The notes under the pieces: generated by a model
Told to the model about the DNA's origin: nothing
The model's input: only the letters and a program-made list of their open reading frames with translations
Databases searched by the model: none
Part shown: piece after piece, positions 16,626 to 51,976 of the stretch
Position numbering within the stretch: the first letter of the stretch is position 1
Layout: each line of letters opens with the position of its first letter
Origin: Mobula birostris
Lineage: Eukaryota
Assembly: GCF_030028105.1 (NCBI RefSeq)
Contig: NC_092375.1
Span: forward strand, 164,857,415-164,921,414
Direction of reading: 5' to 3'
Length of the DNA stretch: 64,000 nucleotides
Made by a program: the position numbers and the translations under genes

Positions 16626-16907
16626 AGCCACCTTCGTTCGTCAGGAGGCCAGAACCATCAATACTGTTGAAAAAAGGTGATTCAGCACACTTGAATTGCC
16701 AAGTGAAAGGGTCTCCTGAAATTAATGTCGCCTGGTACAAAAACAATAAGATTCTCAATTCCTCAGAAAAATACACAATATCATTTACTGACTCTTCAGC
16801 TGAACTTGAGATTAATGATCTAAATGTAGAAGATAGTGGGGATTATGTGTGTGAAGCACAAAATGAAGCTGGGACAGATAGCTGCAGTTCTGTCATTACA
16901 ATCAAAG
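16626..16907 (+). CDS. TTN: Titin Ig exon, 6-Ig repeat 1 position A
   Basis: 282 nt, AG/GT, phase 1-1; EPPSFVRRPEPSILLKKGDSAHLNC. Confidence 0.92.
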
Positions 16908-17029
16908 GTTTGTACAGTATTGATATTGCTACACTTCGCATTGCTGCTATTGAAAAATCCATACTGTTTGTATTTTTAATCTTTTTGAAAAGCAGATAGT
17001 TTGAAAAACATTTATGTATTCCTTTTTAG

Positions 17030-17308
17030 AACCACCCTCTTTTATCAAAACATTTGATCCTACTGAAGTGGTAAGAGGATTCAATTGTACTCTTGAATGT
17101 GAGCTGATGGGTACAACTCCATTTGAAGTTGTTTGGCACAAAGACAAAAAGCTGATCCGATCTAATAAGAAGTACAAGATGATTTTCCAAAATATGCGTG
17201 CTTATCTCCACATTAGTCTTTTTGAGTTCTCAGATGTTGGTGATTATCAATGCACAGTGTCGAATGAAGTAGGGAAGTGTCTCTGTGGTGCAACTTTGAA
17301 AATGAAAG
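17030..17308 (+). CDS. TTN: Titin Ig exon, repeat 1 B
   Basis: 279 nt; EPPSFIKTFDPTEVVRGFNCTLECE. Confidence 0.92.
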
Positions 17309-17409
17309 GTCAGTGATCTCAATGGAAACTGGGAGAAATATGTCCAATAATGTACAAATTTAACAGATGGACAGATAATGTATAACCCACTATTTTTATT
17401 TTAAATTAG

Positions 17410-17688
17410 AACCACCATCATTTGTGAAGAAAATTGAAAACGCAACAGCAATTTTGGGAAGTTCAGCAATGTTTCAATGCAGCATAAAAGGCTCAATGCC
17501 AATCACTGTAACTTGGCTGAAAGATAAAGATCTTATCACAGAAAGCAGTAATGTCAAAATGACTTTTGAGAATAATATTGGTACTCTTCACATTGCTGCT
17601 GTAGAAATGAACAGCAGTGGCAGATACACTTGTCATGCAGAAAATGATGCAGGAAGTCAGAAGTGTCTAGCAACATTAATTGTGAAAG
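17410..17688 (+). CDS. TTN: Titin Ig exon, repeat 1 C
   Basis: 279 nt; EPPSFVKKIENATAILGSSAMFQC. Confidence 0.92.
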
Positions 17689-17779
17689 GTCAGTTTGACA
17701 ATATATTGGTCTGGTTTATAAAACAACATACTTTGCATTGCTAAGCTTTATTAATGTTAACCATTCCATTTCACTACAG

Positions 17780-18058
17780 AGCCAGCAAATATCGTAGAAA
17801 AAGCAGAACCAATTAGTGTGACTGCTGGAGACCCAGCAACTTTGGAGTTCGTAATAACTGGCACACCAGAACTTAAAATTAAATGGTTTAAGAACGGGAA
17901 GGAGCTAATATCCAGTAGAAAATGTAAAACAAGTTTATTAAATAAAATTGCCAGCCTAAGGATTATTTCTGCAGAAAATAAGGATAGTGGTGAATATACT
18001 TTCGAGGTAAAAAACGATGTGGGGAGTTGCAGCTGCAAAACTTCTATTACAGTATTGG
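17780..18058 (+). CDS. TTN: Titin Ig exon, repeat 1 D
   Basis: 279 nt; EPANIVEKAEPISVTAGDPATLEF. Confidence 0.92.
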
Positions 18059-18155
18059 GTTAGTACATAACTTATACCTCCCTTTCTTTCAATAATTTAA
18101 GCATAATTTAATTAATTCAAGTAATATCATTGATTTGTTGCTCTGCCTCGGACAG

Positions 18156-18443
18156 ATCGTATGATTGCTCCAACCTTCACTAAAAAACTGAGGAAAATGA
18201 CCAGCAATTTGGGTGCGACCTTTCATATGGATTGCAAGTTCTCTGGTTCTATCCCTGTTGGTATTTCTTGGTATAAAGATGACAAAGAGTTATCAGCCAA
18301 TGATAAGTACACAATGTCGTGTCAAGACAACACTGCTGCTTTGACGATTAAACAATTAGAAATTGCGGATGGTGGAACTTACTCCTGTAAAGCTACTAAC
18401 TCTGCAGGAAGTGATGAATGCAGTGGAGTCTTAAACGTAAAAG
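18156..18443 (+). CDS. TTN: Titin Ig exon, repeat 1 E
   Basis: 288 nt; DRMIAPTFTKKLRKM. Confidence 0.92.
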
Positions 18444-19108
18444 GTCTGAATTAGTAATTTAATTTTGACTTAAGTCATTTGCTAATGTAGCTTTGTTCCT
18501 TCTGCAAAACTGTTTTCATTTTTAATACATATTCATTGATAAATATGTTGAGATCTGGCAATATTTTGGAGCATTTTTGCTTTCTTAACATCTGTTGCTG
18601 TGTCTCTGCCAAGGAAGCATTTATGTTATGTTACCTTTCAGTTTTCTATCTAATGATCCATAATACTTGCATGAAGCTTGATAGAGACAATTAGTAGAAT
18701 ATTCAATTATAGTAGTCCACCTTGCAGAGCTGCTACCTGCCTTTATTCAATGACAATATGCACAATATTCAAGTCAAATATTGGAAATAAGCATCCTATA
18801 GTTTTTTTTCTCTCTTATACCTCACTTCTGTTTTATAATGGTGTCACTTTCATCCTTTGGAGATCAGCTTACAAAGTACAAATTAGCAATTATTCCTTGT
18901 ATGTTCTGGTTTGTGTTAGTTAACTACTTGACAGATTACTGTGCCTTTTCAATATTAGAATGTATTCAGTTATCTGATTCCAAATATTTAAAGTACTAGT
19001 AGACTACTGAATTTATGACAGTGTACATCTTCAGAGAAGGTGGAGAAAACTTACTTGATATGTTTAATTGTTATGAATTATTGTGATGTTTTTTAAAATG
19101 TCTTTTAG

Positions 19109-19387
19109 AGCCTCCAAGCTTCATAGTAAAACCTGCATCAGAGAAAGTTCTGCCGGGTACAACTGTGAAATTTAAGGTTGTTGTAAATGGAACACCTCCA
19201 ATGTCAATGAAATGGTTCAAGGGCCACACAGAGCTTGTGACTGGTGGCAGCTGTTTCATCATGAAGGATATTTCTACAACCTATCTTGAGCTTTTTTCGG
19301 TGAAGCCATCTGATATGGATGATTACATTTGTGAAATCAGCAATGACGCTGGAACAATTTCCTGTACAACAAATCTTTTTGTTAAAG
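19109..19387 (+). CDS. TTN: Titin Ig exon, repeat 1 F
   Basis: 279 nt; EPPSFIVKPASEKVLPGTTVKFK. Confidence 0.92.
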
Positions 19388-19568: not shown

Positions 19569-19850
19569 AACCACCAACATTCTCCCGGAAGCTAGAACCA
19601 ACAAAATTACTGAAAACTGGTGACTCGGCTCGATTTGAATGCGAGGTTACTGGCACACCTGAAATAAAAATTACATGGTATAGAAAAGACAAGCAGGTTC
19701 ATCCCAGTGATAAATACCGAATCTCATTTGTTAACAATGTGTCAGTTCTTGAAATTCTTGATGGTGACGTGGAAGACAGTGGTGAATACACTTGTGAAGC
19801 TAAGAATGAAGTTGGTAGTGAGAGTTGCAGTGTTACTGTAACAATTAAAG
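19569..19850 (+). CDS. TTN: Titin Ig exon, repeat 2 A
   Basis: 282 nt; EPPTFSRKLEPTKLLKTGDSARFEC. Confidence 0.92.
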
Positions 19851-19971
19851 GTCTGTGAACATATAATTTTATTACTTTGGCTACAGTCATAAGATATTTA
19901 TCAATCTTATGAAGTTGTATCTAAATGTCAAATGACATTTTAGATTGAATTTATTATTTATGTTTTTGCAG

Positions 19972-20250
19972 ATCCTCCATCATTCATAAAAATGCTTGAA
20001 CATCTTGAGGTGATTAAGGCCTCTAATGTTATACTTGAATGTGAACTGGCTGGTACAGCACCTTTTGAAGTTTCTTGGTATAAGGATAATAAGCAGATTA
20101 GGCCGAGCAAAAAATACAAGGCAGTCTGTCAAAACTCTTTTGTTTATTTACATATTCTTAATTTTGACACTGTGGATGTTGGTGAATATCAATGCAAGGT
20201 GTCAAATGAAGTTGGAGGTTGTTCATGCAGTTCTGCAGTGGCTTTGAAAG
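19972..20250 (+). CDS. TTN: Titin Ig exon, repeat 2 B
   Basis: 279 nt; DPPSFIKMLEHLEVIKASNVILECE. Confidence 0.92.
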
Positions 20251-20370
20251 GTTAGTTAAATTTTAGCAAGAATTTATCATCCACAATGTTACAATGAAAT
20301 TGATTTTGTTTTTCTCTAGTTAAAATTTGACTTTGCATTAACTAACCTAAGAGTCCTGTTTTAACAACAG

Positions 20371-20649
20371 AACCACCATCATTTCTCAAGAAGATTGAAA
20401 ATAATACAGTGCTTTTGGGAACATCTGCATTGTTTCAATGTGCTGTGAAAGGTTCAAGACCAATTTCCATAACCTGGCAAAAAGATAAAGATGATATTAC
20501 TGAAGATGCTAATATTAAAATATCTTTTGAAGATGATATAGCAACACTGCATATTGCTTCTGCTGAAAAACATCATGGTGGGAAGTTTGTTTGTGAGGCA
20601 AAGAATGATGCGGGAATCACAAAATGTGTTGCAAATTTAATTGTGAAAG
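20371..20649 (+). CDS. TTN: Titin Ig exon, repeat 2 C
   Basis: 279 nt; EPPSFLKKIENNTVLLGTSALFQC. Confidence 0.92.
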
Positions 20650-22071
20650 GTTGGTTTAAAGATTACTGTCATCTGTGTTAAACCTTCAGTCAGTTCTTTT
20701 AATTAACAGATTTAAATGTTTTGAGTTACTTCAATTTTTGGAAAGATCTTTTAAGATACTAAATGGCAATAAAAGCATATTATTTTCTGGAAAGATTATC
20801 CTATAAAGGAAGTGCTAAACTTAAACTTAGGGCTAGAGTTTTGATTTTTTCAGTGTCCACCATTTCTGCTGCATAAAACTTCTGGGATTTGTGGTAGGGC
20901 AGTGATACACCATTAATTGCTAATGCCACAAATTGCTGGATTTGCACCAGCCTTACAAAAGTGGGAACTTTACTCTCCTGCTTAAAGTTCAATCTTTTGT
21001 CTCAGAAAGAGACTTGTAATTGTTCAATTGAAGCTATCAAATTATAAGCAGGTGATAAACTACTCTGAGATTTTCAAACGTTTTTATTTTCTTTCAGTTG
21101 CTTTCTGTTTATAGTTCTAATCACTCTTTTAATCCCATCTTTCTTTCAGTCTCTATTTATTTTTACCTATTTAATTTGTCATTAATTCATTCTTTTTCTT
21201 TCTATGTTGTTCCACCTATCACTTTATCTACCTATAAAGTTAAGTATTATATGAATTTGACAGCTGAACGATATTCAGAAAATACCACTTGTTCCTTGTG
21301 CAAAGTGGTGCCATGATACCTTGTATTATTTTGCCACTTGTTTTGTAAAATTAATGAATTCTGAAGGGTGTAGAAAACAATGGACTTTGATATTCACTCC
21401 TTCCTTTCTGAATACCCTGACAGCCTATGGCAGCTAGCCATAGTCCACGGCTTTTGAATTTTTCTCAATGTCTCTGAAGGAGACTCTTAGATATTAGTCA
21501 AAATAGATTTAGTAACTTTTAGAAGCTAAACTAAAATTTAAAGCCACATAGAGAATTTGAAAGCATTAAAGTAATGCAAAGATTTCCTTTATTGATTTTT
21601 TTTTTACTAGTGTTGATTCAAATAAATTGGGTCTCCTTTGCAAACCAACTAGCCCTAGCATAGAATTGAGGGAACAGTTGAAAAGTGCCCATTCCCATTT
21701 CTCCAGATTATTGCTTTGCCTCTGGATTTGACAATGAGTCAAGAATTTGAGAAAGTTGCTAGATATGCTGGCATCTGACTTCCAGAGTACTTTGGAGCTT
21801 TGTGTGAATAGCTAAGACAAACTTAGTCACTAATGGTTCATAGATGGATTGAATGAACCCCAAGTTGATTGGATATTTGTTTAATTAGTTCTCCTGAACA
21901 CGAGGTGTGTATGAAGAGATGCACTGATATTTATAATCAGATATTTATAATCTGCATGTGGTTTTAGATTTGATAGCTTGGCTCAGGGGAAGTAAAATGA
22001 AAGCTCTTAAATAGTCTTCCATTGTTTCTTATATTCTTGTCCTCTAATATTAGTTTTTTTTATTGTCACAG

Positions 22072-22350
22072 AACCTGCAAGTATTATAGAAAAAGCAGAT
22101 TCTATTAGTGTAACTGCAGGAGAGCCAGCAACATTGGACTGCAGTTTTACAGGAACACCAGAAATTAAAGCCAGGTGGTTTAAGAATGGCACAGAATTGA
22201 TTACTGGGAGAAAATACAAAATCAGCGTTGCAAATAAGATTACTAGTTTAAAGATCCCTTTTACTGAGAAAGAGGATAGTGGTGAATATACCTGTGAGGT
22301 CGAGAATGACGTTGGTAGCAGCAGTTGCAAAGCTTCCATTACAGTATTGG
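22072..22350 (+). CDS. TTN: Titin Ig exon, repeat 2 D
   Basis: 279 nt; EPASIIEKADSISVTAGEPATLDC. Confidence 0.92.
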
Positions 22351-22452
22351 GTTGGTATTTTTACTTTTCCATTTTATAATGATCACTGAAATATTTAAAA
22401 GAAGATTGTGGGAGAAATAGTAATCTTTGATTTCCTACCATGTGTTGGACAG

Positions 22453-22740
22453 ATCGCATAGTTCCACCATCATTTAAAAGAAACTTAAAAAAGACGGATG
22501 GCATCAAAACTTCTTTTGTTAAGATGGAATGCAAAATCTCTGGTTCTCTTCCAATGACTGTACTTTGGTATAAGGACAATGAAGAATTAACATCTAGTGA
22601 AAAGCATAAGTTTTCTTACTATGATAACATTGCACAGCTGGAGATTCATCAACTAGAAATGACAGATGGTGGAAGCTACACTTGCAGAGCAACAAATTCT
22701 GCTGGAACTGATCAAAGTATTGGTGTCTTAACTGTGAAAG
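22453..22740 (+). CDS. TTN: Titin Ig exon, repeat 2 E
   Basis: 288 nt; DRIVPPSFKRNLKKTDG. Confidence 0.92.
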
Positions 22741-22900
22741 GTTCGAAATGTTGCATTCAATTGATTAATTGCTTAAAAATTAGATTGACTGATATCCTTC
22801 AGTTAACCAAGGCATAACTTTTATCCACGGCTTCTATTTAATTTACTGCATTAACAAACATGTTGAGAATGCATGTATTAGGTTTATGCTCTCTTATTTT

Positions 22901-23130
22901 GTGTGGGCACGTGGCCAAGTGGTTAAGGCATTCGTCTAGTGATCTAAAGGTTGCCAGTTCGAGCCTTAGCTGAGGCAGCGTGTTGTGTCCTTGAGCAAGG
23001 CACTTAACCACACATTGCTCTATGTCTGTGTGAGGAGTGGCACGCCACACAGTCTTTCGTTCAGCACCTTGTAAGGCATGAAAGTCCCCGACGCTGGCCT
23101 CCTAGGCCTGAGTCGACGATCCCCTCCCTC
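22901..23130 (+). mobile_element. tRNA-derived SINE with CORE/Meta-like central domain and 10-bp TSD
   Basis: A box tggccaagtgg 22912-22922, B box gttcgagcc 22957-22965, central gtgtccttgagcaaggcacttaacc; direct repeat ctcttatttt at 22891-22900 and 23131-23140. Confidence 0.8.
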
Positions 23131-23216
23131 CTCTTATTTTAACATTTTATTTTCAGAAAAAGTACAATTTTCATTTACTTTTCTTGTGATAATGATTTGT
23201 CCTCTTGAATTTTCAG

Positions 23217-23495
23217 AACCTCCTTATTTTACTCTGAAACCTTTGTCTCAGGATGTTATACCTGGTTCTAAAGTACAGTTTAGGAGTGTTATTGGTGGAA
23301 CTCCTCCAATAACCATCAAATGGTTCAAGGACAAAAAGGAACTGGTGCCAAGTAGTTCACTTTACATTTCCAAAGAAGGTTCAACAAGTATGCTACAGCT
23401 CCATTCAGCAAAAATCTCTGATACTGGTGACTACACTTGTCGAGTCAGCAATGAAGTTGGCAGTGAAACATGTGTGGCACATCTTTTTGTCAAAG
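23217..23495 (+). CDS. TTN: Titin Ig exon, repeat 2 F
   Basis: 279 nt; EPPYFTLKPLSQDVIPGSKVQFRS. Confidence 0.92.
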
Positions 23496-25475: not shown

Positions 25476-25757
25476 AGCCTCCAAGCTTCATTCAGAAGCC
25501 GGATCGTACAACATTATTGAAAAAAGGAAGTTCTACATCTCTTGAGTGCTCAGTAATTGGTACACCTGAGATCAAAATAACTTGGTACAAGCAAGAAAGT
25601 GAAATTCTCCCAAATGACAAATTCAGGATGTCATTTGTCGATTCAAAACCTGTGCTTGAGCTTACTAATGTCAATGTGGAAGACAGTGGTCAATATACTT
25701 GTAGAGCAGAAAATGAAGCTGGCTTTGACAACTGCAGCGTTACAATTACTGTTAAAG
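25476..25757 (+). CDS. TTN: Titin Ig exon, repeat 3 A
   Basis: 282 nt; EPPSFIQKPDRTTLLKKGSSTSLEC. Confidence 0.92.
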
Positions 25758-25774
25758 GTGTGTGACCATAAAAT

Positions 25775-27610
25775 GTAAAAGAGCTATAGAATAAGCAACA
25801 CAGAAGTAGGCCCTTTGGCTCGACTCATCCATATCCTGTTTGACCAACCCCTCTCAATTTTTCTTATCCATGTAGCTGTCCAAGAGTTTTAAATGTTGTT
25901 GCCTTAAGGCTGATTTATACTTGTGCGCACTACCTTACGCCGTAGCCTACGCAAGTTGGCTGTGCTGTTGTGACCATTTATACTTGTATGTTGGTGTGTC
26001 TGCGTCGCTCTGCAATTCACCACCAAAACGCTAGTTGGTGGTGGGGTTTCTAAGCCACTGTGTTGAGTTTCTTCATATTGAAACTCAACACGAAGAAACT
26101 CAAACTTCAAACAATGGCGACTGAAACTGAAGGAGGGTGAATTTTCTGTGCTTGTCCGGCCACTGAGAGACATGGACGAGGAAATGCGTTTCAAATATTT
26201 TCGGATGTCAGCAGGTAGATTTGATGATTTGGTGCATCGTCTCCAACCATTTATTTCGCATTAGCGTACGCACAGTATACTCAGAGACTGGCAATTACCA
26301 TTCGAGTTTTAGTTTCAGGTGGAAGTCAACAGGCTGTAGCAGCTAGCTACAAACTGGCGTCAAGCACAGGGTCCGCCTTAATTTCGGAGGTCTGTAAAGC
26401 TTTATGGAAAGCATTGCAGCCAGAGTTCCTTCCCTGTCCTTCAGTTGCCCAATGGGAAGCTATTGCAGCGTAGGAAGGAATGGGATGCTACCAAACGGAC
26501 CAATCACAGTTGTTGCAGTCTGCATCGCCGCAACGCATAGTTACATTTTTGAGGAGGTGCACGTCAGACTACCGCATAGGGTAGGGTGTAGGGTACGTGG
26601 CTATGCGGTACCTAGGACGTCAATTTGACGCACAAGAATAAATTGGCCTTTAGTCATTTCTTCTGGCAGTTCATTCTACATACACACTGCCCTCTGCGTG
26701 AAGAGGTTGCCCCTCAGGCTCTTTAAGAACTTTCCCCTCTCATTTTAAATCTATATCCTATGGTTTTTTTATTCACTTTTACTATGAAAAAGACTATGTA
26801 CATTCACTCTATCTATACCCGTCATAATTTTATATAGCTCTATAAGGTTACTGTTGAGTTTCCTACACTCTAGGGAATAAAGTCCTAGCCTGAAGATCTC
26901 TCCTTCTATTGTAAGTCAGGCCCTAAGGTATTGACAGCATTCTTCTTTGCAGTCTTTCCAGCTTAATGACATCATTCCTGTAACTGTACACAGTACTCCA
27001 GATAGAGCCTCACCAACGTTTTGTTTCAATTCCTGTCTCACGTGCCCTGACTGAGGAAGACTAACATGGAAAATGTCTTATTCACCACCCAGTATCCCTG
27101 TGACAAATGTATATGTACTCCTCAGTCCCTTTGTTCTCCAATACATACCAGAGTCCTAATGTTTATTATGAAAGTCCTACTCGAATTTCACTTCTCAAAA
27201 TATCTCATATTTAGTTACCTGGTTGATAACCTTTTTTGCTGACTACAGTACCACCCATTTAAAGTCATCTGCAAACTTACTGAACTTACTTACATTCTCA
27301 TCTAAATTGTTTATATGAATGACAAACAACAATAGATGCAACACCATTCATAGTGTTTAACACTAGTCACAGGCCTTTGGTTTAAAAAATTAATTTGTAT
27401 CATTGCCCCTGCCTCCTACCATCATGTCAATTATGTATCCACTTAGCTAACTCACCCAGGATTTCATGCGATCTAATCTTCCGTACTGATGTTCCAGATA
27501 GGACCTTGTCAACGGTCTTGCTTAAGTCCATATAGACAATATCAATCAACTCCCCTGTTCTCATCAATTCTCTAAGTTACCTCTTCAAAAATCTTAATAG
27601 ACTTTAATGA
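25775..27610 (-). mobile_element. Decayed CR1 3' fragment split by a Harbinger insertion
   Basis: atagaataagcaacacagaagtaggccctttgg tail; continuous CR1-like sequence on both sides of 25907-26649. Confidence 0.7.
25907..26649 (+). mobile_element. PIF/Harbinger internally deleted element with transposase N-terminal fragment
   Basis: TIRs aggctgatttatacttgtgcg / cgcacaagaataaattggcct; 3-bp TSD TTA at 25904-06 and 26650-52; broken translation [17 protein letters not shown] and [29 protein letters not shown]...[10 protein letters not shown]...WEAIA. Confidence 0.85.
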
Positions 27611-27690
27611 AGGAGTTTTGAAAACTTATTTTCCAGTGATATTTCTTTTTTGCTTGGTATCTTAACTTTTGTTCTTCCTTTTTTTCAAAG

Positions 27691-40709: not shown

Positions 40710-41233
40710 GTGTGGATTTTTTTTTTGTCTGTAGTTTTGAGTTGTATGCATTGTTTTTCTTTTTGCTGCTTTGCTACGTTGAACTTTAAGCTACATCATT
40801 TTGTCTTCTTGACAGTTGACCAGATGTTGTCAAAGAAATGTATCTTGGCAAACATGAAGTGTGCATTGTGGTCTTGTGACATTCAAATCTGAGTTGATTG
40901 TCAGACTCAGTGCTCTTAGAAGCCCAACTGTATACAAGTTGAGGCACATTTAATGATGGGGAATCCTGTCTCATATAGTGGCAGTTATAAGTATTCTCAT
41001 AAGCTAGTATCTCACACCACTACTGTGTAGAAAGCTATTTTACTGGTTGCAGTGATGAGGAACATGAAAAAGAATGTTGTTTTGCTGATTTAAGAGAGAG
41101 CTAACTTTTGAATGTGTTTGGTGAATCTGATCTTTGTATTTTATGGCCAATTATTTATGCATATACATTTGCTTGAATTTGTTTTGATTGCCTTATAAAC
41201 GTGTGTTGAGATCTGTAATATTTTGGATTCTAG

Positions 41234-41515
41234 AACCTCCAAGCTTCATTAAAAAGCTGCACTCCCCAACAATCCTAAAGGAAGGTGTCTCAGCACATTT
41301 TGAATGCAGTATAAGGGGCACACCTAACATTAAAGTTACCTGGTACAAAAATGGTGATGAAATTATAGTCAGTGAAAAGTTTCTGATGTCCTTTGATGGC
41401 GCTGTGGCAGTTCTTGAGATTATTGATGTGATTCCAGAAGACAGTGCATGCTACATCTGTGAGGCACAAAATGAAGCTGGCAGTGAGAGCTGCAGCACTG
41501 AAGTTGAAGTTAAAG
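41234..41515 (+). CDS. TTN: Titin Ig exon, repeat 6 A
   Basis: 282 nt; EPPSFIKKLHSPTILKEGVSAHFEC. Confidence 0.92.
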
Positions 41516-41634
41516 GTGTGTAGTAATATCTTTTATTCAATAAGACTATATATTTTTTACTTTCTTGAGCAGGGATTTTGATAGCTTCTGTATTTTTATT
41601 CATTTAGATATTTTTACTGTGATTACTTTTTTAG

Positions 41635-41913
41635 AACCACCAAGCTTTAGACGGAAACTTCAATCCATTGAGATAGTTAAATCCAATGATATTTCCCTCG
41701 AATGTGAGGTGGCTGGTACAGGTCCCTTTGAAGTTATGTGGTATAGAGATAATAAACAAATTCGACGCAGTAAAAAATACAAAATGGTCTCTGACAGTTC
41801 TGTAGTTAGTATTTGCATTCTAAACTCCGATACCTTGGATGTTGGCGAATACAAGTGCATCATTCAAAATGATGTGGGATGTTGTTCCTGCAGTTCTACA
41901 GTCAGTTTGAAAG
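41635..41913 (+). CDS. TTN: Titin Ig exon, repeat 6 B (probable chimera at duplication junction)
   Basis: 279 nt; EPPSFRRKLQSIEIVKSNDISLECE. Confidence 0.92.
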
Positions 41914-42103
41914 GTTAGTTTTACTATGTTGTCAGAAGATATTTTCCTTTTGATGGTTAAGGTGATGTTAAAAACATCTTATTACGTGCTTGGAAACTCA
42001 ATGCTGATTTATTTGCAAAATTCTTCAATTTATCTTACCTCTTAAGTGTCATGAAAAAGCGAAATAATCCCATTAAGTCATGTTATTATTTATTTTAAAC
42101 TAG

Positions 42104-42382
42104 AACCCCCAGGATTTATAAAGAAGATTGAAAATATTACAACAGTATCAGGCAATTCAGTTGTATTCCAAAGTCAAGTAAAAGGCTCAAAGCCTATCTA
42201 TTTAACTTGGATGAAAGATAAAGATGTTATTGAAGAAGATGGTAATATTGCTTTGTCTTTTGAGAATAATATTGCTACTCTTCAAATAAATGCTGTTGGA
42301 GAAAATCATGCTGGGAAGTATACATGCCAGGTCAAGAATGATGCAGGAACTGAGAAGTGTTTTGCCACATTGTTGGTAGCAG
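42104..42382 (+). CDS. TTN: Titin Ig exon, repeat 6 C (absent from ORF track)
   Basis: 279 nt, open frame translated by hand; EPPGFIKKIENITTVSGNSVVFQSQ...FATLLVA. Confidence 0.92.
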
Positions 42383-42517
42383 GTCAGTAGGATATTGATT
42401 ACCTTAATATTTCCCTGCACTCCAATGATTTTTCTAATCATAAGTCAATTCAAATACTTTGCAATGCATCAACTAAAATAAAATAATGACATATAAAAGA
42501 GATTTTTATTCCCATAG

Positions 42518-42796
42518 AACCAGCAAAAATCACAGAACAAGCACAGTCAATCAGTGTAACGGCAGGAAATACAGCAAACCTGGAATGTACTGTAACTGGT
42601 ACACCAGAACTAACAGTTAAATGTTTTAAGGATGGTACTGAAATGGTGTCCAGTAGAAAACACAGAATCAGCTTTGAGCATAATGTGGTCAGCCTAAAGA
42701 TTCCTTCTGTTTCTAATGATGACACTGGTGAATATACTTTTGAAGTCAAGAATCAGTTTGGAACCAGCAGCTGTAAAGCTTCGTTGACAGTATTAG
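42518..42796 (+). CDS. TTN: Titin Ig exon, repeat 6 D (core Trp replaced by Cys)
   Basis: 279 nt; EPAKITEQAQSISVTAGNTANLEC...LTVKCFKDG. Confidence 0.92.
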
Positions 42797-43125
42797 GTTG
42801 GTGTTTTATTTTCAATTGGAAGTCAGCTAATCTACTTATCTAATGGGTTAAAATATGGTTATTAAATAAGGAAATCCTAATTGCATTGAACATAAACATA
42901 TATAAAGGCAATGTTAGAATTTTTAAATTGAAATCTAGTGATAATAGGATTTGGCTGATTAGCTATAATGGAAAATTTTAAATTAATGTTATTTTTCAAC
43001 AGTCACCTTAGATATATATAAAACATGACAAATCTTACTTTAAAAATGCACAATAAATTTTGATTCATTTAAATATTTGCTATATGAATTGATTGACTGT
43101 GCTTTTGTCACTTTACCTTGGACAG

Positions 43126-43413
43126 ATCAACTAATTCCCCCATTATTCAAAAGAAAATTACGCAGAATGGACAGTGTTTTAGGGTCTTCCATACAAATGG
43201 AATGCAAAGTTTCTGGTTCTCTTCCAATGAGCTTCTCATGGTATAAGGATGGCATATTAATAACGACTAGTGAGAAATACAAAATATCATCTCAAGATAA
43301 CACAACAACTTTAGAAGTGAATCAAACAGATGTTTCAGATCATGGAACTTACATTTGCCAGGCAGCCAATTCAGTGGGAAGTGATGAATGCAGTGGTTTC
43401 TTAAATGTAACAG
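43126..43413 (+). CDS. TTN: Titin Ig exon, repeat 6 E
   Basis: 288 nt; DQLIPPLFKRKLRRMDSVLG. Confidence 0.92.
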
Positions 43414-43644
43414 GTTTGAAAGTTGAATTTGCTTTCAGTTCAATTTATATCTCTTCTGTATTTATACACGTAGTTAAATAATAATTTTGACTCTTAAAGT
43501 AAAATTAATACATGTAGAGCTTAAAATTTGATTAGAATTTATTGTAAATTCTTCTTTTAGTTCCAACTTTTCATTTACACGATGATGCAGTGTAAACGAT
43601 GTACTGTGGGAACCAATAGTGTTTCTTTTCTGCCTGATTTTCAG

Positions 43645-43923
43645 AGCCTCCAAGTTTCATAGAAAAGCCTATAGACCAGGAAAGCTTACCTGGTTCATCA
43701 GTGCAGTTTAGAAGTGTTGTGAAAGGAACTGCTCCACTAACTATAAAATGGCTGAAGGATGGCAGGGAACTGATGTCTGGAGCTGATTATTTTATTTTAA
43801 ATGAAAGCACAACAAGTTTACTTGAGCTGTTTTCAGCCAAAGTTTCTGATTCTGGTGACTACATTTGTGAAGTTGCCAACAAAGCTGGCAGTGCCTCTTG
43901 TGCGGCAAGACTCTTTATAAAAG
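43645..43923 (+). CDS. TTN: Titin Ig exon, repeat 6 F
   Basis: 279 nt; EPPSFIEKPIDQESLPGSSVQFRS. Confidence 0.92.
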
Positions 43924-44152
43924 GTGTGCAATTTGTCTGTACTTGTGTTGTGGAATGGCTTTAAATATTGTGTGCAGAATCTTTTTTGATTTGTTCTGTA
44001 ATGTTCTCTTTGTTAATTATGTGACTTCTGTTTTGTGTATTGTCTTTCTTCATACTTTTAAATATTCTGTGTGTCTCATTCTTCTTAATACTAAGTAGAT
44101 CTGTTTTGGATTTTTATATTTCTCATGAAGTTTGCAACTCTTTTTTCTACAG

Positions 44153-44434
44153 AGCCTCCATATTTTATTAAGAAATTAGATCCAACAGCAATATTTAAAA
44201 AAGGAGACACAGCAATTTTTGAGTGTAAAGTAACTGGCACACCAGAAATCAAAGTCTCTTGGTTCAAGAACTATCGTGAAATTAGTTTTGATGAAAAATA
44301 CAAAATGACATTTGTTGATTCAGTGGCAATCTTGGAGATTGCTAATGTAATCTTGGATGACAGTGGCAATTATTCTTGTAAAGCCCAAAATGAAGCTGGC
44401 AGTGAATCTTGCGACATTATGGTCACAGTTAAAG
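44153..44434 (+). CDS. TTN: Titin Ig exon, repeat 7 A
   Basis: 282 nt; EPPYFIKKLDPTAIFKKGDTAIFEC. Confidence 0.92.
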
Positions 44435-45215
44435 GTGTGTAAATATTCCCAATTTCATTTTTCATGATTGATCCAGAAGTCTTTCCAGCCTTGTTGCATC
44501 TTTTGTTTCTTGAAAGCCATTATTTAAAACTCTGAATACTAGGCTTTTCAAAATGGATGTTAAAATAAACTGCAGACTCAAATTGAATTATGAAACAATG
44601 CTAATCTTGATAGACTGACTTCAGAACTGATTTCTGAAGACTGATTTTAACTTTCAGATCATTACTGTAGGAATGCCTCACTTAGAGGCCAAAATTTTCT
44701 TCATGGGACCAGAAGGAACTCTGCTCTTCCTCATATTGCTATTATGGAAAGATAATTAAATTCTCTCAAAAGCCTTGCTACTTTCCCAGCAATGTTTATT
44801 TGTCCATAGATGTGTCATGGAATCAGCACCATTGGTTTCCTCTTGTCTAGTGCAATTTAAAGTTCAATTCCTACACTTGTCTCAATTCTCCTTAACCAAT
44901 TCAAATTGAAGATTGGATTCATGGGAATCTCGTGAAATATTTTAATAGACCTGGCTAAGAATGATTTTGGATTTGTAAGTGATTTATGAAGCACAAAGGC
45001 TACAGGCATTTATTGATGTATTTTGTTGATCTGTGTAAAATAGTAGCTGTAACAAGATTTACCCACATGCTGATTGGTCTCCTATAATAAATTAACACTT
45101 TAAAATAAAAAATTATTCAGAGTTTTCTTTTGATGATTATTGTTGGAAATCATTGAGTAGACCTAATGTTTGTACCCAGTGATTTATAGACCATTTTATC
45201 ATGTTTGCTCTTCAG

Positions 45216-45494
45216 AACCTCCAGCATTTATGAAGATACTTGAACCTGCTGAGGTAGTTAAATCTAGTGATGTTACTCTTGAATGTGAGGTGGCTGGTAC
45301 AGCTCCCTTTGAAGTTTTGTGGTATAAGGACAATAAGCAACTTCGTCGCAGTAAAAAGTACAAAATGATCTCTGACATTTCTTTAGTCAGTCTTTGCATT
45401 CTTACATCTGATAGCTCAGATGTTGGTGAATACGTGTGTGTGGTCAAAAATGATGTGGGAAGTTGTTCCTGCAGTTCTACCGTCAAACTGAAAG
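45216..45494 (+). CDS. TTN: Titin Ig exon, repeat 7 B
   Basis: 279 nt; EPPAFMKILEPAEVVKSSDVTLECE. Confidence 0.92.
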
Positions 45495-45624
45495 GTCAGT
45501 TATGTCCTTATCCTTGTTTCCTTGATATTGTGTGCTACTTATTCTATTAGTATATTTTTATCAAATAATACTAAATTTTCCAAGCATGATAGAAATATAA
45601 CAAGCTATACTCTCTTCAAACTAG

Positions 45625-45903
45625 AGCGACCAACCTTCTTACAAACAATAGAAAATGCAACAGTATTTTCCGGAAATCCAGCTGTGTTTCAGTGTGTTGT
45701 AAAAGGCTCAGGACCTATTACTACAAGTTGGAAAAAAGATGACAAACATGTCCGTGAAGCTGAAAATATAAAAATTTCCTTTGAAAACAATATTGCTACA
45801 TTACAGATCATTAATGCTGAGGAAAATCACAGTGGAAATTACATTTGTCAGGCAAAGAATGATGCGGGAACAGCAAAATGCTTTGCTACTTTGGTTGTAA
45901 TGG
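45625..45903 (+). CDS. TTN: Titin Ig exon, repeat 7 C
   Basis: 279 nt; ERPTFLQTIENATVFSGNPAVFQC. Confidence 0.92.
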
Positions 45904-46094
45904 GTTAGTAAGCAATTATAAGCACAAATATTATCTGCATAATATAGTAATTATGTTGCGACTGAAATTATTTTAATTTTAAAATTAAATGAGAGCATAA
46001 AAGTGAGAAATGTGAAAAATGGAAATATATTGAGTAGCCAGTTAAGTGTACACAGAACACTGTTCCCTTTCTGAATCTTTGTAGTACCCAATGT

Positions 46095-46680
46095 ACATAG
46101 AGCAGTACAGCACAGTACAGGCCCTTTGGCCCATGATATTTTCTTGTCCAAGATAAACATACTCCCTGATCAATTTAACACTTCCCTCCCACTCAGCCCA
46201 TATCTCTCCATTTTTCTTAAGTGTGTCTAAGATTCTTTTAAATAATCTTATTGTATCTCGCTCTACCACACCTCTAACAGTGTATTCCATGCACTCACCA
46301 CTCTCTGTGTAACATTACCTTGCTTCTCTTGAACTCAATCTCTTAACTAATGATGACCAACACACCATTGGCCTGCATGGCAGCTTGAGTCATCTATGTA
46401 CTTTGACCCTAATATCCCTCTGTTTCTCCATATTACTAAGAATCATGCTATTAACTTTGTACTCCACCATCAATTTCAATCTTCCAAAATATATCAGCTC
46501 ACATTTTAATGGATTGAACTCCATCTGTGACTTCTCTGCCCAACTCTGTATCATGTCCATATCCTGTTGTAGCCTATGACAACCTTCTACACTACCTACA
46601 ATTTATTACCCTATCCTTCCACTTTCTTATCTAAGTCTTTATAAAAATCACAAAGAGCTGGGACCCCAGAACAGTACCAT
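46095..46680 (-). mobile_element. CR1 fragments (3' tail plus RT piece)
   Basis: gtacagcacagtacaggccctttggccc tail; ctccatctgtgacttctctgcccaac matches the RT region of the younger CR1s. Confidence 0.7.
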
Positions 46681-47006
46681 TGTCAGCTCTTCAAAAGATT
46701 ATTGCTAGGTATCAACAAGACATTTTATCCTCAAGTGTGTTTCTAAACGAGATTTATAAATGGTTGACCAGTTAAAGATAATTTGGTACCATCAGCACTG
46801 GGATTGCTAAAGCTAATTTCACATGAAACACCTTTGGCTGCATGCAGAAGGGACCTTTATTCCAATAGACCTGATTGCTTTGACCTGGGTATGAGGAATC
46901 ATACACATCAGCGGTTTATCCCTTGTGAAATTATTTCCTTAAAATGGCAACTTTTGATTCAATTTTGCTAAATTCTCTTGATGTAAATGATCTATTTTTT
47001 TCACAG

Positions 47007-47285
47007 AACCAGCAAATATTATAGAAAAATCTGAACCACTCACAGTGACTTCAGGAAACCCAGCCATTTTGGAATGTGCTGTAGCTGGTACACCAGTATT
47101 AAATGTTGCATGGTTCAAAAGTGGAAAGCAACTGGAATCAAACAGAAGATATAAATTGAGTTTTGCAAATAAGATAGCCAGGTTAAAAATTTTGTCTGCT
47201 GAACCCGATGACAGTGGAAATTATGCCTTTAAAGTCCAGAATGAGTTTGGGGCTAACAGCTGTGATATTCATTTAACTGTAATAG
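47007..47285 (+). CDS. TTN: Titin Ig exon, repeat 7 D
   Basis: 279 nt; EPANIIEKSEPLTVTSGNPAILEC. Confidence 0.92.
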
Positions 47286-47409
47286 GTCAGTGATTACATT
47301 TTGTTAATAGCGTTGTTTTCTTAAAATATCAAAAATAGTGGAGCTCAAAATTTGAAATATTGACACTTGATCATTAATGTTATTGTCATTTGTCCCTTTA
47401 TATGAACAG

Positions 47410-47697
47410 AGCAAATTATTCCTCCGTTGTTGACAAGGAAGTTAAAGGAAATGGGCAGTACTTTAGGATCTTTTGTGCGAATGGAATTCAAAGTTTCTGG
47501 TTCTATTCCAATGAGCATTACTTGGTATAAAGAGGACAAAGAAATATCAGCTAGTGACAAATATAAGATGTTATTCCAAGAGAACACAGTCTCCTTAGAA
47601 ATCAATGAGCTAGACTTTTCAGATGCTGGAATTTACACTTGCAAAGCAGCAAATTCAGCAGGAAAGGATGAATGCAGTGCTGTCTTAAGTGTAAAAG
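47410..47697 (+). CDS. TTN: Titin Ig exon, repeat 7 E
   Basis: 288 nt; EQIIPPLLTRKLKEMGSTLGSFVRMEF. Confidence 0.92.
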
Positions 47698-47949
47698 GTT
47701 GGAAGTATTTCTTAACACGGTTTTTATCATTGAATTTGTTTACAAAAGAGATTGTGTTTGCTATTAGCTGCAAAAGTGAAATTTCCAATTAAATGAATCA
47801 ACTAATTCTACACTCTGTTAAGCATTATTAGAATTTCAAAGGCTATGTTAGTTCGTATAATTGATAAAGTTAGCTTTAATCTGATCTTTTCTTCCAATTT
47901 ATGTATGAACTTAAGTTAATTAAATGTTTCTTTGTTGTATGATTTTTAG

Positions 47950-48228
47950 AACCCCCAAGCTTTACAGATAAAGTAATGTCCCAGGATGTTGTACTCGGTT
48001 CTACAGTGCAATTTAAGGGTGTTGTGAAAGGAAGTACACCATTATCTACAAAATGGTTCAAAGGGGACAGAGAATTGATGCATGGTGTGGCATATTCTAT
48101 TTGGAATGATGGCTCGACATATTTTCTAGATTTGCTCTCAGCTAAGATATCTGATGCGGGTAGTTATACCTGCCAAGTTAGCAATGATGTTGGTACAGAT
48201 GCCTGTTCTGCAGAACTATTTGTTAAAG
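47950..48228 (+). CDS. TTN: Titin Ig exon, repeat 7 F
   Basis: 279 nt; EPPSFTDKVMSQDVVLGSTVQFKG. Confidence 0.92.
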
Positions 48229-48339
48229 GTGTGCAAATCTGTCTTTACTTTGCAATTTTGACTTAGAACAGTTTATATTGCTTTGCCGTCTTAAAAGTTT
48301 AGAAACATTAGAAAAGCGGCCCAAGTACTACACTTGCCT

Positions 48340-49040
48340 ATTCACCTCTTTCCTCACCTCCATTCAGGACCCCAAACAGCCCTTCCAGTGAGGCAAGAGT
48401 GAACCTGCAAATCTGCTGGTCTATTGTATCTGGTGCTCCTTATGCAGCCTCCTCTACATTGTTGAGACCCATCGTAAATTGGGGGACTGCTTCACTGAGT
48501 ACCTCCATTCCATCCACTAAAAGCATAACTTCATGGTGACCAAACATTTTAATTCCAATTCCCATTCTTGTTCTGACATGATGGTCCATGGTCTCCTCTT
48601 GTGCCAAGATGAGGTGATCCTCAGGGTGGAGGAACAATACCTTATATTTCATCTGGGTAGCCTCCAACATGATGGCATGAATATTGATTTCTCCTTCCAG
48701 TAATTTTTCCCTCCCTTCCCCTCTTCTTCTATTCCCCACTCTGGCCTTTTACCTCTTCTTGCCTGCATATCACTTACCCCAGGTCCCCTCGTCCTTTCCT
48801 TACTCCTATGGTCCACTATCCTCTCCTGTCAGATTCCTTTCTCTCCAGTCCTTAACCTTTCCCACTCACTTGACTTCCAGTATCACCCTCCTTCACCATC
48901 CCTCACCTTTTTAATCTTGCATCTTCCCCCTTCCTTCTCAGTCCTGAAGAAGTGTCTCAGCCCAAAACATCAACTGTTCATTCATTTCATAGAAGCTACC
49001 TGATCTGCTGAGTTCCTCCAGCATCTTGTGTGTGTTTCTT
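48340..49040 (+). mobile_element. 5'-truncated Penelope-like retroelement: GIY-YIG endonuclease remnant plus 3' tail with fossil hammerhead
   Basis: From 48419: VYCIWCSLCSLLYIVETHRKLGDCFTEYLHSIH*...HFNSNSHS...EEQYLIFHLGSLQHDGMNIDFSF; HHR-like 48939-48976. Confidence 0.85.
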
Positions 49041-49498
49041 TAGGAACATTATCTTTTTCTTGATAGTGATATACTCAAGTGGTAGAATTTTGTAGAGCTA
49101 TACATGGAGAGGGTAAGATATCTTGAAGCACTCTGATTTTATCTTAAGATCAGATTAATAGAGAACATCTATATATGATGTTTAGTTTAAGAAAGACCTT
49201 GCAAATCAGGTAGTGACCACTGTTATTTATATGCATCATCCAGTCCTAGAGGAATAATTATGGCAATTTGAAGGATTTTTTGACGATCCCCCCCCCCGCC
49301 CCCCCAATTAAATGATGAAGGCTGCATCCTAATAGCATATTAATAACAAAATACTGTTTGCTCGAATTAACCTATGAATTTCCTAAATTAGTAATTTGGA
49401 TTATAATCATTATATAGTCAGTTGTTTATGACTTGGTTTGAATTTTTATTGAATAACGTTTAAATGTATATTTAAATTTTTAATATTCTGGTTTCCAG

Positions 49499-49780
49499 AA
49501 CCCCCTACTTTCATTAAGAAGTTGAATTCTTCAACAATATTGAAAAAAGGCGTCTCAGCACGCTTTGAGTGCATTGTTACTGGAACGCCTGAAATCAAAG
49601 TGTCTTGGTATAAAAATGGTGCTGAAGTTGTTGCCAGTGACAAATATATAATATCATTTGATGGCTCTGTGGCAGTTTTTGAGATTATTGATATGGTTGT
49701 CGAGGACAGTATGTGCTACGTTTGTGAGATTCGAAATGAAGCTGGCAGTGACAGCTGCAGCACAGAAGTTGAAGTTAAAG
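49499..49780 (+). CDS. TTN: Titin Ig exon, repeat 8 A
   Basis: 282 nt; EPPTFIKKLNSSTILKKGVSARFEC. Confidence 0.92.
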
Positions 49781-49896
49781 GTCTGTAATAATGTCCAGAT
49801 TGGTATTAAACTACATTTGTTACTTTCTGGGGTAGGGATATTGTTAGTTTCAGTAATTTTGTTAATTTTGATTTCTTTACTATGATTACCTTATAG

Positions 49897-50175
49897 AACC
49901 TCCCAGTTTCAGAAGGAAACTTGAATCGGCTGAGGTTATAAGAAGTAGTGGTCTTACTCTTGAATGTGAGGTGGCTGGTGCAGGCCCATTTGATGTTATG
50001 TGGTTTAAGGACAATAAAAAGATCCCACCAAGTGAAAAATACAAGATGATCACAAAGAATGTTTTAATTAGCCTTCACATCTTAAAGGTGGATATTCCAC
50101 TTGTTGGTGAATATAAATGCACAGTAACAAATGAGGTGGGAAGCTGCTCCTGCAGTTGCATTGTCAGTTTAAAAG
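49897..50175 (+). CDS. TTN: Titin Ig exon, repeat 8 B
   Basis: 279 nt; EPPSFRRKLESAEVIRSSGLTLECE. Confidence 0.92.
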
Positions 50176-50400
50176 GTTAGTTACATGGCGATACAAATAT
50201 ACATTTTGCCATCTTTATCGGATATATTTTAAAGTAAAATTCTAGTTAAAGGATATATATTGGGGGTTGGGAGGTAACTTGAATCTTAGACTTTTTAATG
50301 ATTTTCATAACACCACATATTTTGCCATTTTATTTTCATCTTGAAAGAGGGCAGGACATATCACTCATATTTATTTGTATGCTTCTTTATCTTGAATTAG

Positions 50401-50679
50401 AACCTCCATCATTTATAAAGAAGATTGAAAATATTACAACATTTGTTGGAAATTCAACTTGTTTTCAGTGCCTTGTAACAGGCTCAGAGCCTCTATCTAT
50501 AAGTTGGATGAAAGATAATGTCAATATCAAAGAAGATGAAAATATATCAATTTCCTTTGAAAACAATCTTGCTGTGCTAACATTTGCGGCAGTTGAAGCA
50601 AAAGATGGTGGGAAATACATCTGTCAGGCCAAAAATGATGCAGGGGTTGAGAAGTCTTTTGCCACATTGATAGTAACAG
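50401..50679 (+). CDS. TTN: Titin Ig exon, repeat 8 C
   Basis: 279 nt; EPPSFIKKIENITTFVGNSTCFQC. Confidence 0.92.
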
Positions 50680-50825
50680 GTTGGTTGGGAATATTAAATA
50701 TAATTAGCTGACACATAAATACAAATTATTTCTGTTCAAAATTATTTATCAGTTTAGCGTGAAAAAGAAGGTGGTGTTATATTGAATGTACTGACATCAC
50801 TCAGAATAATATTTTCTTTTAACAG

Positions 50826-51104
50826 AGCCTGCAAAAATTGTTGAGGCAGCAAAATCATGCAACGTAACTGTAAAAAATCCAGCAGTTTTGGAATGTATTG
50901 TAGCAGGCACACCAGACCTAAAGGTTAAGTGGTTTAAAGACAGAATGGAGCTCACATCCAGCAGAAAGTATAAATTGACTTTTGAGAATAATGTGGCTAG
51001 TTTAAAGATTCATTCGGCAGAGAAGTCAAATAGTGGTGAATATACTTTTGAGGTCCAGAATGAATTTGGAGTTGACAACTGCAAAGCTTCCTTGACTGTA
51101 TTAG
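50826..51104 (+). CDS. TTN: Titin Ig exon, repeat 8 D
   Basis: 279 nt; EPAKIVEAAKSCNVTVKNPAVLEC. Confidence 0.92.
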
Positions 51105-51220
51105 GTTAGTATTTCTAATTTGGACATGAAAAATAGAATTCTGTAATGACGAACGAAACTTTGCTGTTTTAAGTTAACCTTTGCATCTTAAGCTTACTAG
51201 TTGTGCTCTGTGTTACACAG

Positions 51221-51508
51221 ATCAAACGATTGCTCCAACATTTACAAAAAAATTAAAGGACATGGGCACTTCTCTAGGGTCTTCTGTGACCATGGAGTGC
51301 AAAGTATCTGGCTCTGTTCCGATGACCATTCTTTGGCATAAAGATGGGAAGGAGATAATGGATAGTAGCAAATATAAACTATCACAGCAAGATAACGCCT
51401 CATCTTTGGAAATTAATCAACTAGAAATCTCAGATTGTGGAATTTATTCTTGCAGAGTATCAAATATAGCAGGAACTGATGAATGCAGTGGCAAACTAAT
51501 TGTGAAAG
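51221..51508 (+). CDS. TTN: Titin Ig exon, repeat 8 E
   Basis: 288 nt; DQTIAPTFTKKLKDMGTSLG. Confidence 0.92.
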
Positions 51509-51697
51509 GTGTGACTGTCTTTGTATTTTTACTCATATTTTTGGCAAATTAGATGTTTGACGTCATGTTTTAACCTCATGAATGTCTTTTGTATAACCTA
51601 ATTATTCTAAATTTATTATTCATTACTTAAAATGCAAAAAATTGTAAGTTTATGCTCTTTCTTGCAACAAATATATTCTTTGTTCGATGAATTTTAG

Positions 51698-51976
51698 AGC
51701 CACCAAGATTTATAAAAAAGCCTATGCCTCAGGAGGTTCCCCCGCGCTCTACAGTGCTGTTCAAGAGTGATGCAACAGGAACGCCCCCACTGTCTTTCAA
51801 GTGGTTTAAGGATGACAAGGAGCTAAATTCTGATGCAACATGTTGCATTGTGACAGAAGTTTCATCCAGTTCTGTGCAACTGTATTCAGTAAACCATTCC
51901 AATACGGGATATTATACTTGCCATGTCACCAATGATGTTGGCACAGATTCTTGTACAGCAAAATTGTTTGTGACAG
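51698..51976 (+). CDS. TTN: Titin Ig exon, repeat 8 F
   Basis: 279 nt; EPPRFIKKPMPQEVPPRSTVLFKS. Confidence 0.92.

Follow-up and report, generated by a model that had tools for sequence, protein, structure and literature searches.

An eight-fold 6-Ig super-repeat array in manta ray titin and a probable 12-exon unequal crossover within it

The middle-Ig segment of human titin contains three 6-Ig super-repeats followed by three 10-Ig super-repeats, as a sequence-only reading of the present locus had noted and as Hanashima et al. state (2025, Sci Rep 15:24715; PMC12241362), whereas eight 6-Ig super-repeats lie in tandem in the 64,000-nt stretch of the manta ray (Mobula birostris) genome analyzed here (the window). 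This raises the questions of how and when the last of these repeats were added, and whether all of them are genuine, functional titin exons. The explanation that best accounts for the locus overall, and which is considered highly probable, is that it encodes the differentially spliced middle tandem-Ig spring of titin (connectin) in an 8 + 1 layout (6-Ig + 10-Ig), to which two repeats were added by one 12-exon unequal crossover after the chimaera split.

Exon architecture and gene identity

A phase-aware search for AG...GT-bounded exons recovered 58 consecutive exons on the + strand (16626-63239), each encoding one I-set Ig domain. The length cycle 282-279-279-279-288-279 nt is repeated eight times in the 48 exons of 16626-51976, and the next 10 exons (52417-63239) measure 282, 279, 279, 279, 288, 279, 279, 279, 288, and 288 nt. 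The 58 exons each have a GT donor and an AG acceptor that follows a tract rich in pyrimidines; all are of phase 1-1, and their spliced sequence of 16,308 nt is translated into 5,435 residues with zero stop codons. The sequence-only reading had described a strict A-F exon cycle, open in all eight rounds, and a following 10-Ig unit; all of its coordinates for the cycle were found to hold, and the ten exons of the unit were recovered. Since every exon is of phase 1-1, any run of exons could be skipped with the reading frame kept.

One member of each class, A to J, matched the Pfam I-set family (PF07679) with E-values of 1e-16 to 1e-26. The mean pairwise amino acid identity was 52-58% within classes and 27-39% between classes, for every one of the 54 A-F domains the top four matches were to members of its own class, and the nearest relatives of each array domain were located 6n domains away, whereas neighboring domains were 22-43% identical. 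With these class identities, the six-domain cycle is far beyond chance. Residues G30, N81, and G84 do not vary across the 58 domains, and W38 occurs in 56 of them; D4 and D6 carry Cys where the Ig fold has its core Trp, which may weaken these two domains. The first six domains of the 10-Ig unit (A9-F9) were assigned to classes A-F, as in the 6-Ig unit, while H9, I9, and J9 best matched the H-I-J portion of a turtle H-I-J-A-B-C titin fragment (62, 47, and 53% identity, respectively), and a killifish fragment was matched by G9 and H9. The Ig domains upstream of the array (11185..13659) are probably the equivalents of I27-I29, because their position agrees with the "three N-terminal Ig domains" described for the middle-Ig segment (PMC12241362). 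No additional Ig remnant or pseudo-exon was detected within the array by tblastn. A second 10-Ig unit was not seen before the window end at 64000, near which a new Ig-type exon begins (~63984); the N2A region, farther downstream, falls beyond the window.

Table 1. Coordinates of the Ig-encoding features and of the inferred duplication in the window (SR, 6-Ig super-repeat)
Feature	Position	Strand	Basis or remark
Three Ig domains upstream of array	11185-11472 (one), 13096-13659 (two, single open stretch)	+	tblastn, Pfam I-set
SR1 (A1-F1)	16626..19387	+	exon table, class assignment, Pfam I-set
SR2 (A2-F2)	19569..23495	+	exon table, class assignment
SR3 (A3-F3)	25476..30596	+	exon table, class assignment; P0272 100% identical
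SR4 (A4-F4)	30799..35316	+	exon table; M. birostris model P0314 matches C4-F4 at 100%
SR5 (A5-F5)	35568..40709	+	exon table; D5-F5 97-99% identical to M. hypostoma P0323
SR6 (A6-F6)	41234..43923	+	chimera: SR8-like head, SR4-like body
SR7 (A7-F7)	44153..48228	+	younger twin of SR5; M. hypostoma P0271 98-100%
SR8 (A8-F8)	49499..51976	+	exon table, class assignment
10-Ig super-repeat (A9-F9 + G, H, I, J)	52417..63239	+	exon table, class assignment, Pfam
Duplicated unit, first copy (B4..A6)	31170..41515	+	colinear blastn blocks, pairwise amino acid identity
Duplicated unit, second copy (B6..A8)	41635..49780	+	colinear blastn blocks, elevated exon pairs
Inferred crossover junction inside exon B6	41653..41667	+	maximum chi-square breakpoint, intron alignment, AU test

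The locus was identified as manta ray titin because the NCBI "titin-like" M. birostris models P0272 and P0314 match the spliced exons at 100%; the match to P0272 includes E2-F2. The "titin-like" models of M. hypostoma are 97-100% identical to array exons, and the titin gene in which the matching models are nested has a product of 30,179 aa; a gene other than titin was rejected. The array combines I-set modules, symmetric one-Ig exons, six-domain periodicity, a 10-Ig unit, and a location inside the titin gene, as is characteristic of the titin middle-Ig segment. Some of the array exons are absent from the NCBI main titin models and are annotated as separate nested genes, an omission that shows only that they are skipped in the chosen isoform.

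Junction, divergence, and constraint of the twin copies

We infer that two of the eight repeats derive from a single tandem duplication of 12 exons, in which B4..A6 gave rise to B6..A8. In blastn blocks the copies are colinear at 75-87% nucleotide identity, introns included (the blastn blocks were preferred to global pairwise alignment, in which paralogous introns could not be told apart from control introns). Identity is elevated in 12 exon pairs, B4/B6 through A6/A8 (64-93% at the amino acid level), and SR7 shares 71-88% of its residues with SR5. Exon A6, the intron downstream of it, and ~20-30 nt at the start of B6 are SR8-like, whereas the remainder of B6 onward is SR4-like. The maximum chi-square breakpoint divides SR8-like sequence on the left from SR4-like sequence on the right (informative sites 28:61 vs 106:30, chi2 = 48), and a clade uniting A4 with A6 was rejected (p-AU = 0.0036). 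Unequal homologous crossing-over is proposed because the junction is chimeric and lies within exon B6. The ancestors of SR8 and SR4, two units apart, would have recombined in such a crossover, which would have duplicated 12 exons in one step, raised the number of repeats from six to eight, and left the chimeric exon B6 behind at the junction.

Assemblers are known to have difficulty with tandem arrays, but no evidence was found that the eight-fold array is an artefact (a haplotype duplicated in error or a repeat joined wrongly). Even between the two most similar copies, exons differ by 5-16% and the blastn-alignable intron columns by ~24%, and a haplotype origin is contradicted because this divergence is far above haplotype differences. 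The window is free of N runs, and the distinct copies D5-A6 and F6-C8 are also encoded, with 97-100% identity, in the independent assembly of M. hypostoma. The artefactual duplication that the sequence-only reading had named as a possible refutation is excluded by the sequence, with copies that differ by 5-34% at the nucleotide level and recur in the assembly of a second species; its probability is considered negligible.

Comparison of the twin copies gave a pN of 0.090 and a pS of 0.285 (pN/pS ~0.3, Fisher p = 1e-36), which argues against neutrality and indicates that purifying selection acts on both copies. These values also bear on the other possible refutation named by the sequence-only reading, in which the extra repeats would be exon-like relics left out of all titin mRNA, as might be supposed from the skipping of several extra-repeat exons by the NCBI main titin models and from the missing core Trp in D4 and D6. 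Against this, the splice sites, phase, and open frame are kept in 58/58 exons, the fold-defining residues are retained, and the elephant shark skeletal-muscle cDNA keeps the middle-Ig segment except i36-41 (PMC12241362). The extra repeats are very unlikely to be such relics, and the exon sequences suggest that the extra exons are included in manta mRNA.

Synonymous divergence is uneven along the duplicated unit, with pS ranging from 0.11 to 0.52 across exon pairs (chi2 = 54, p = 1e-7) and reaching its maxima at both unit edges, which points to later exchange between the copies. The unevenness could also reflect duplication in two or more steps instead of a single event and subsequent conversion. 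Under the preferred reading, a single crossover, the twin copies would later have exchanged sequence, by which their divergence became uneven, and constraint at the protein level would have persisted on both.

Timing relative to the chimaera and shark lineages

Orthologous repeats of other cartilaginous fishes allowed the duplication to be placed. For SR8, orthologous domains were found in Mustelus (at 78% identity for A, 70% for B, 68% for C, and 76% for D) and Callorhinchus (65-71%), and D2, at 75-76% identity to a Callorhinchus fragment, is an orthologous copy. In the trees, (Mustelus,(F5,F7)) excludes the Callorhinchus F domain (support 94/96), and (A8,A6,Mustelus A) excludes the Callorhinchus A domain (support 86/91); these topologies indicate that the duplication postdates the split of the chimaera lineage.

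The duplication may have preceded or followed the shark-ray split; the Mustelus fragment forms a three-way split with SR5 and SR7. The Mustelus repeat adjoining SR8 is equidistant from manta SR5/SR7 (84/84, 75/78, 78/76, 79/80, and 84/85% identity), SR5 and SR7 resemble one another slightly more (85, 80, 80, 87, and 88%), and they are grouped together in the best concatenated tree and in the D, E, and F class trees. The two extra repeats might, on this evidence, have arisen in the ray lineage after the shark split, the eight repeats of the whale shark then being an independent expansion from six; this is a tentative reading, given somewhat less than even weight. Support for (SR5,SR7) in the best concatenated tree is weak (70/47), and (SR7,Mustelus) was not rejected (p-AU = 0.38). 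The least homogenized edge pair, A6/A8, is in an exact three-way tie with Mustelus A, the same SR5-SR7 picture would be expected from gene conversion within the ray, and the shared count of eight in whale shark and manta would be explained more simply by a single origin on the elasmobranch stem. Slightly more speculative still is the proposal that the change from six to eight occurred independently in rays and sharks, with two repeats gained at once in either lineage through a homologous crossover out of register. If so, the titin spring would have a built-in, recurrent route of lengthening, with ongoing exchange keeping the twins alike.

Splicing and comparison with other titins

From titin biology, the included Ig domains would act in series as an entropic I-band spring, and the number of domains spliced in would set the extensible length of titin and the passive stiffness of muscle. 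In the elephant shark heart, i28-i69 are spliced out, removing all 6-Ig repeats; the middle-Ig segment of this species is used mainly in skeletal muscle, and its retention in skeletal muscle and skipping in heart are shared by elephant shark and human (PMC12241362). Cardiac use of the manta array is doubtful, and the suggestion in the sequence-only reading that extra domains compensate for N2B loss is unsupported, since every 6-Ig repeat is lost from the elephant shark heart. The figure of ~30 extra Ig domains in that reading was overstated, as a single 10-Ig unit is visible in the ray against three in human: the super-repeats hold 58 domains in manta and 48 in human, a visible net gain of +10 and, for muscle physiology, a modest one.

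An earlier description of such arrays in cartilaginous fish had been suspected, and one exists: PMC12241362 reports 6 + 1 super-repeats in the elephant shark and 8 + 1 in the whale shark (Rhincodon typus). The eight-fold layout is already known from the latter and is not new; new here are the proposed 12-exon crossover with its chimeric junction, the purifying selection on both copies, their likely later exchange, and the post-chimaera timing. Like the whale shark, the manta is an elasmobranch with eight 6-Ig repeats, then one 10-Ig unit, and one Ig per exon. Batoids, to which the manta belongs, were not examined in PMC12241362, and no ray or skate titin papers were found in literature searches. 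The 2025 finding in a shark and a chimaera is extended to a ray, and with ray joining shark, the enlarged 6-Ig array looks general for elasmobranch titin. Its last enlargement appears to be legible in the DNA, as a 12-exon unequal crossover and a chimeric exon, then selection on both copies. The manta junction provides a concrete mark to look for in sharks, skates, and rays, which could separate single from repeated lengthening of the spring.

The elephant shark (Callorhinchus milii) shares the A-F and A-J classes and the single 10-Ig unit with manta, but has six 6-Ig repeats rather than eight; manta SR5/7 and SR8 have their orthologues among its last repeats, and its single F domain is co-orthologous to F5 and F7. 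Human TTN (I27-I79) has the same domain classes, one Ig per exon, the same super-repeat logic, and a differentially spliced spring, but the 10-Ig unit was expanded in human (three copies), whereas elasmobranchs expanded the 6-Ig unit (eight copies). Zebrafish ttna, as cited in PMC12241362, resembles manta in its single 10-Ig unit and differs in having three 6-Ig repeats. Duplication "in six-domain blocks" was described in PMC12241362, with a transposon trigger suggested but not tested there; the last step in manta would instead have involved a 12-exon block and a homologous crossover inside an exon. The same paper cites a triplicated block of nine PEVK exons in human TTN, which, like the manta unit, is a multi-exon tandem duplication in the titin spring; that block consists of another exon type and its origin is ascribed to a LINE-1 insertion, whereas in manta the junction falls within exon sequence that is homologous.

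Exon array and gene identity

For every open Ig-like stretch, AG...GT pairs in its reading frame were sought, which revealed 58 consecutive exons on the + strand (16626-63239), comprising eight six-Ig super-repeats (SR1-SR8; exons A1 to F8, named by domain class and repeat number) and a ten-exon unit (A9 to J9). All 58 exons are phase 1-1, with a GT donor and an AG acceptor preceded by a pyrimidine-rich tract, and the spliced 16,308 nt form one open frame of 5,435 codons. The window is free of N runs and has a G+C content of ~35%. One member of each class from A to J matched Pfam I-set (E 1e-16 to 1e-26), and tblastn with all 58 domains as queries found no additional Ig remnants within the array. 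The exon search recovered exactly the borders and lengths proposed in the sequence-only reading, and the array that it described was confirmed by the 58-exon call, the open frame and the class periodicity.

Mean amino-acid identity is 52-58% within classes and 27-39% between them; every one of the 54 A-F domains finds its four best matches within its class, and adjacent domains are only 22-43% identical. The fold positions G30, N81 and G84 do not vary across the 58 domains. G9-J9 form a set apart from classes A-F. A turtle titin fragment (H-I-J-A-B-C) matches H9, I9 and J9 at 62, 47 and 53%, respectively, and a killifish fragment matches G9 and H9, thus defining the last ten exons as the vertebrate 10-Ig super-repeat.

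Three Ig domains lie directly upstream of the array. Downstream, a new exon opens with the acceptor ...gatacag; its first codons encode D-R-K-I-P-P, which is how Ig exons of the 288-nt E/I type usually begin, and the Ig series thus runs on beyond J9. Two long open stretches at the 5′ end of the window, in different frames and overlapping at 1086-1186, contain five Ig domains with unique sequence between them, and together look like a very large titin exon, perhaps Novex-3-like; the shift of frame may mark an intron or a break.

A profile search returned two NCBI Mobula birostris models, "titin-like" (823 aa) and "peroxidasin homolog" (444 aa), which are 100% identical, in each domain, to spliced exons E2 to A4 and C4 to A5. 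For M. hypostoma, two models cover D5 to A6 and F6 to C8 at 97-100% identity. These small models are nested within titin genes (main products of 30,179 and 30,655 aa), and their spans are consistent with the exon coordinates found here. The 100% identity and the nesting identify the window as manta/devil ray titin, and the matches indicate that an independent gene-prediction pipeline placed the same exon borders. Several array exons are omitted from the NCBI main titin models, which demonstrates no more than skipping in the chosen isoform. NCBI splits runs of skipped titin Ig exons off as nested genes of their own, under misleading names ("peroxidasin homolog" in M. birostris, "myosin light chain kinase, smooth muscle-like" in Mustelus asterias), and main titin models therefore under-count middle-Ig domains.

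Features of the titin segment (window coordinates)
Feature	Position	Strand	Description
Open stretch	2-1186
Open stretch	1086-4709
Upstream Ig domains	11185-13659		three domains
6-Ig array A1..F8	16626-51976	+	282-279-279-279-288-279 nt, eight cycles
Colinear block	30792-32313 with 41228-42821		self-comparison
Colinear block	34428-35875 with 43043-44460		self-comparison
Foldback, D4-E4 intron	33961-34094		66-nt arms, 85% complementary, 2-nt gap
Foldback, E5-F5 intron	39990-40343		85-nt arms, 84% complementary, 184-nt loop
10-exon unit A9..J9	52417-63239	+	six lengths of the 6-Ig cycle again, then 279, 279, 288, 288 nt
LINE copy, G9-H9 intron	57025-58980	-	reverse-transcriptase ORF, 651 aa
LINE copy, I9-J9 intron	59925-62812	-	reverse-transcriptase ORF, 638 aa; AP-endonuclease ORF
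New exon opening	63984-64000

Duplication of a twelve-exon unit

Self-comparison revealed colinear blocks of 75-87% nucleotide identity continuing through the short introns (two are listed in the table; three further blocks were found), in which exon columns are 86% and intron columns 76% identical. Twelve exon pairs (B4/B6, C4/C6 through F5/F7 and A6/A8) stand out at 64-93% amino-acid identity, and make up two twin copies of one unit, B4 to A6 and B6 to A8. A4 and A6 are 54% identical, an A4+A6 clade was rejected (p-AU 0.0036), and A4 is outside the duplicated unit.

The junction was mapped by aligning the heads of SR4, SR6 and SR8 with one another. The intron 5′ of A6, A6 itself and the entire A6-B6 intron show SR8 affinity, including a ~30-nt stretch in the A6-B6 intron that is common to the SR8 side and missing from the A4-B4 intron, and SR4 affinity begins early in exon B6. 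Informative sites place the switch at 41653-41667: the ratio of SR4-like to SR8-like sites is 28:61 to its left and 106:30 to its right (chi2 48). A chimeric repeat such as SR6 is the expected product of an unequal homologous crossover between repeats two units apart, and one such step could have added the 12 exons. The junction lies within homologous exon sequence rather than at a transposon end, and the antisense LINE copies of the window are located away from it, in introns of the 10-Ig unit. These two copies are ~69% identical in nucleotide sequence; two other introns carry foldback inverted repeats.

Of the 58 domains, 56 have the tryptophan at the core of the Ig fold. D4 (32010-32288) and D6 (42518-42796) carry Cys instead (KCFK versus KWFK), a change that is older than the duplication and was retained in both twins, and that may weaken these domains mechanically. 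E7 (47410-47697) has Phe at the B-strand Cys position (MEFKVSG); its twin E5 reads MECKVSG, and most domains have Cys.

Selection, probable exchange and timing

Across the 12 twin pairs, pN (0.090) is well under pS (0.285; odds ratio 0.25, Fisher p 1e-36), indicating that both copies were maintained as protein. The pS values are heterogeneous (0.11-0.52, chi2 54, p 1e-7), greatest where the unit begins and ends (B4/B6, 0.42; A6/A8, 0.52) and smallest in C4-F4 versus C6-F6. This pattern is most simply explained if the twins later exchanged sequence and the edges were spared; a stepwise duplication history may instead account for the unevenness. An assembly artefact is very unlikely, since divergence is 5-16% between the closest twin exons and about a quarter between aligned introns, and the same distinct copies are present in the assembly of a second species, M. 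hypostoma.

Domains of the chimaera Callorhinchus lie outside the manta twins: its F domain falls outside (Mustelus,(F5,F7)) with support of 94/96, and its A domain outside (A8,A6,Mustelus A) with 86/91. The duplication therefore postdates the chimaera split, which fits the six repeats of the elephant shark. In the shark Mustelus asterias, the repeat adjoining SR8 is equally near SR5 and SR7; in the concatenated tree, (SR5,SR7) received support of only 70/47, (SR7,Mustelus) was not rejected (p-AU 0.38), and A6, A8 and Mustelus A tie exactly. We lean towards a duplication that arose once, in the elasmobranch stem, with homogenisation later in the ray; a duplication in the ray lineage, parallel to that of the whale shark, is a credible but somewhat less probable history.

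Probable spring function and comparison with other titins

Tandem Ig domains in series act as an entropic spring, with the number of domains included governed by exon skipping. From what is known of titin biology, the manta segment would play this role, and its phase 1-1 design permits skipping. The interpretation in the sequence-only reading is partly supported. Its estimate of about 30 extra domains relative to human holds for the 6-Ig repeats alone; within the window, the super-repeats total 58 domains versus 48 in human, because the manta segment shows one 10-Ig unit and human titin has three. Its proposal that the extra repeats offset loss of N2B finds no support: in the elephant shark ventricle, splicing skips domains i28-i69 and with them all of the 6-Ig repeats (PMC12241362).

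A literature search found no publication on ray or skate titin. The modest additions made here are the crossover junction, and the pattern of selection and exchange in the twins. The numbers of 6-Ig and 10-Ig super-repeats are six and one in elephant shark, eight and one in whale shark, three and three in human, and three and one in zebrafish (Hanashima et al. 2025, PMC12241362). The manta layout is the same as that of the whale shark; the eight-plus-one architecture is thus already published for another elasmobranch, and the manta is a further case.
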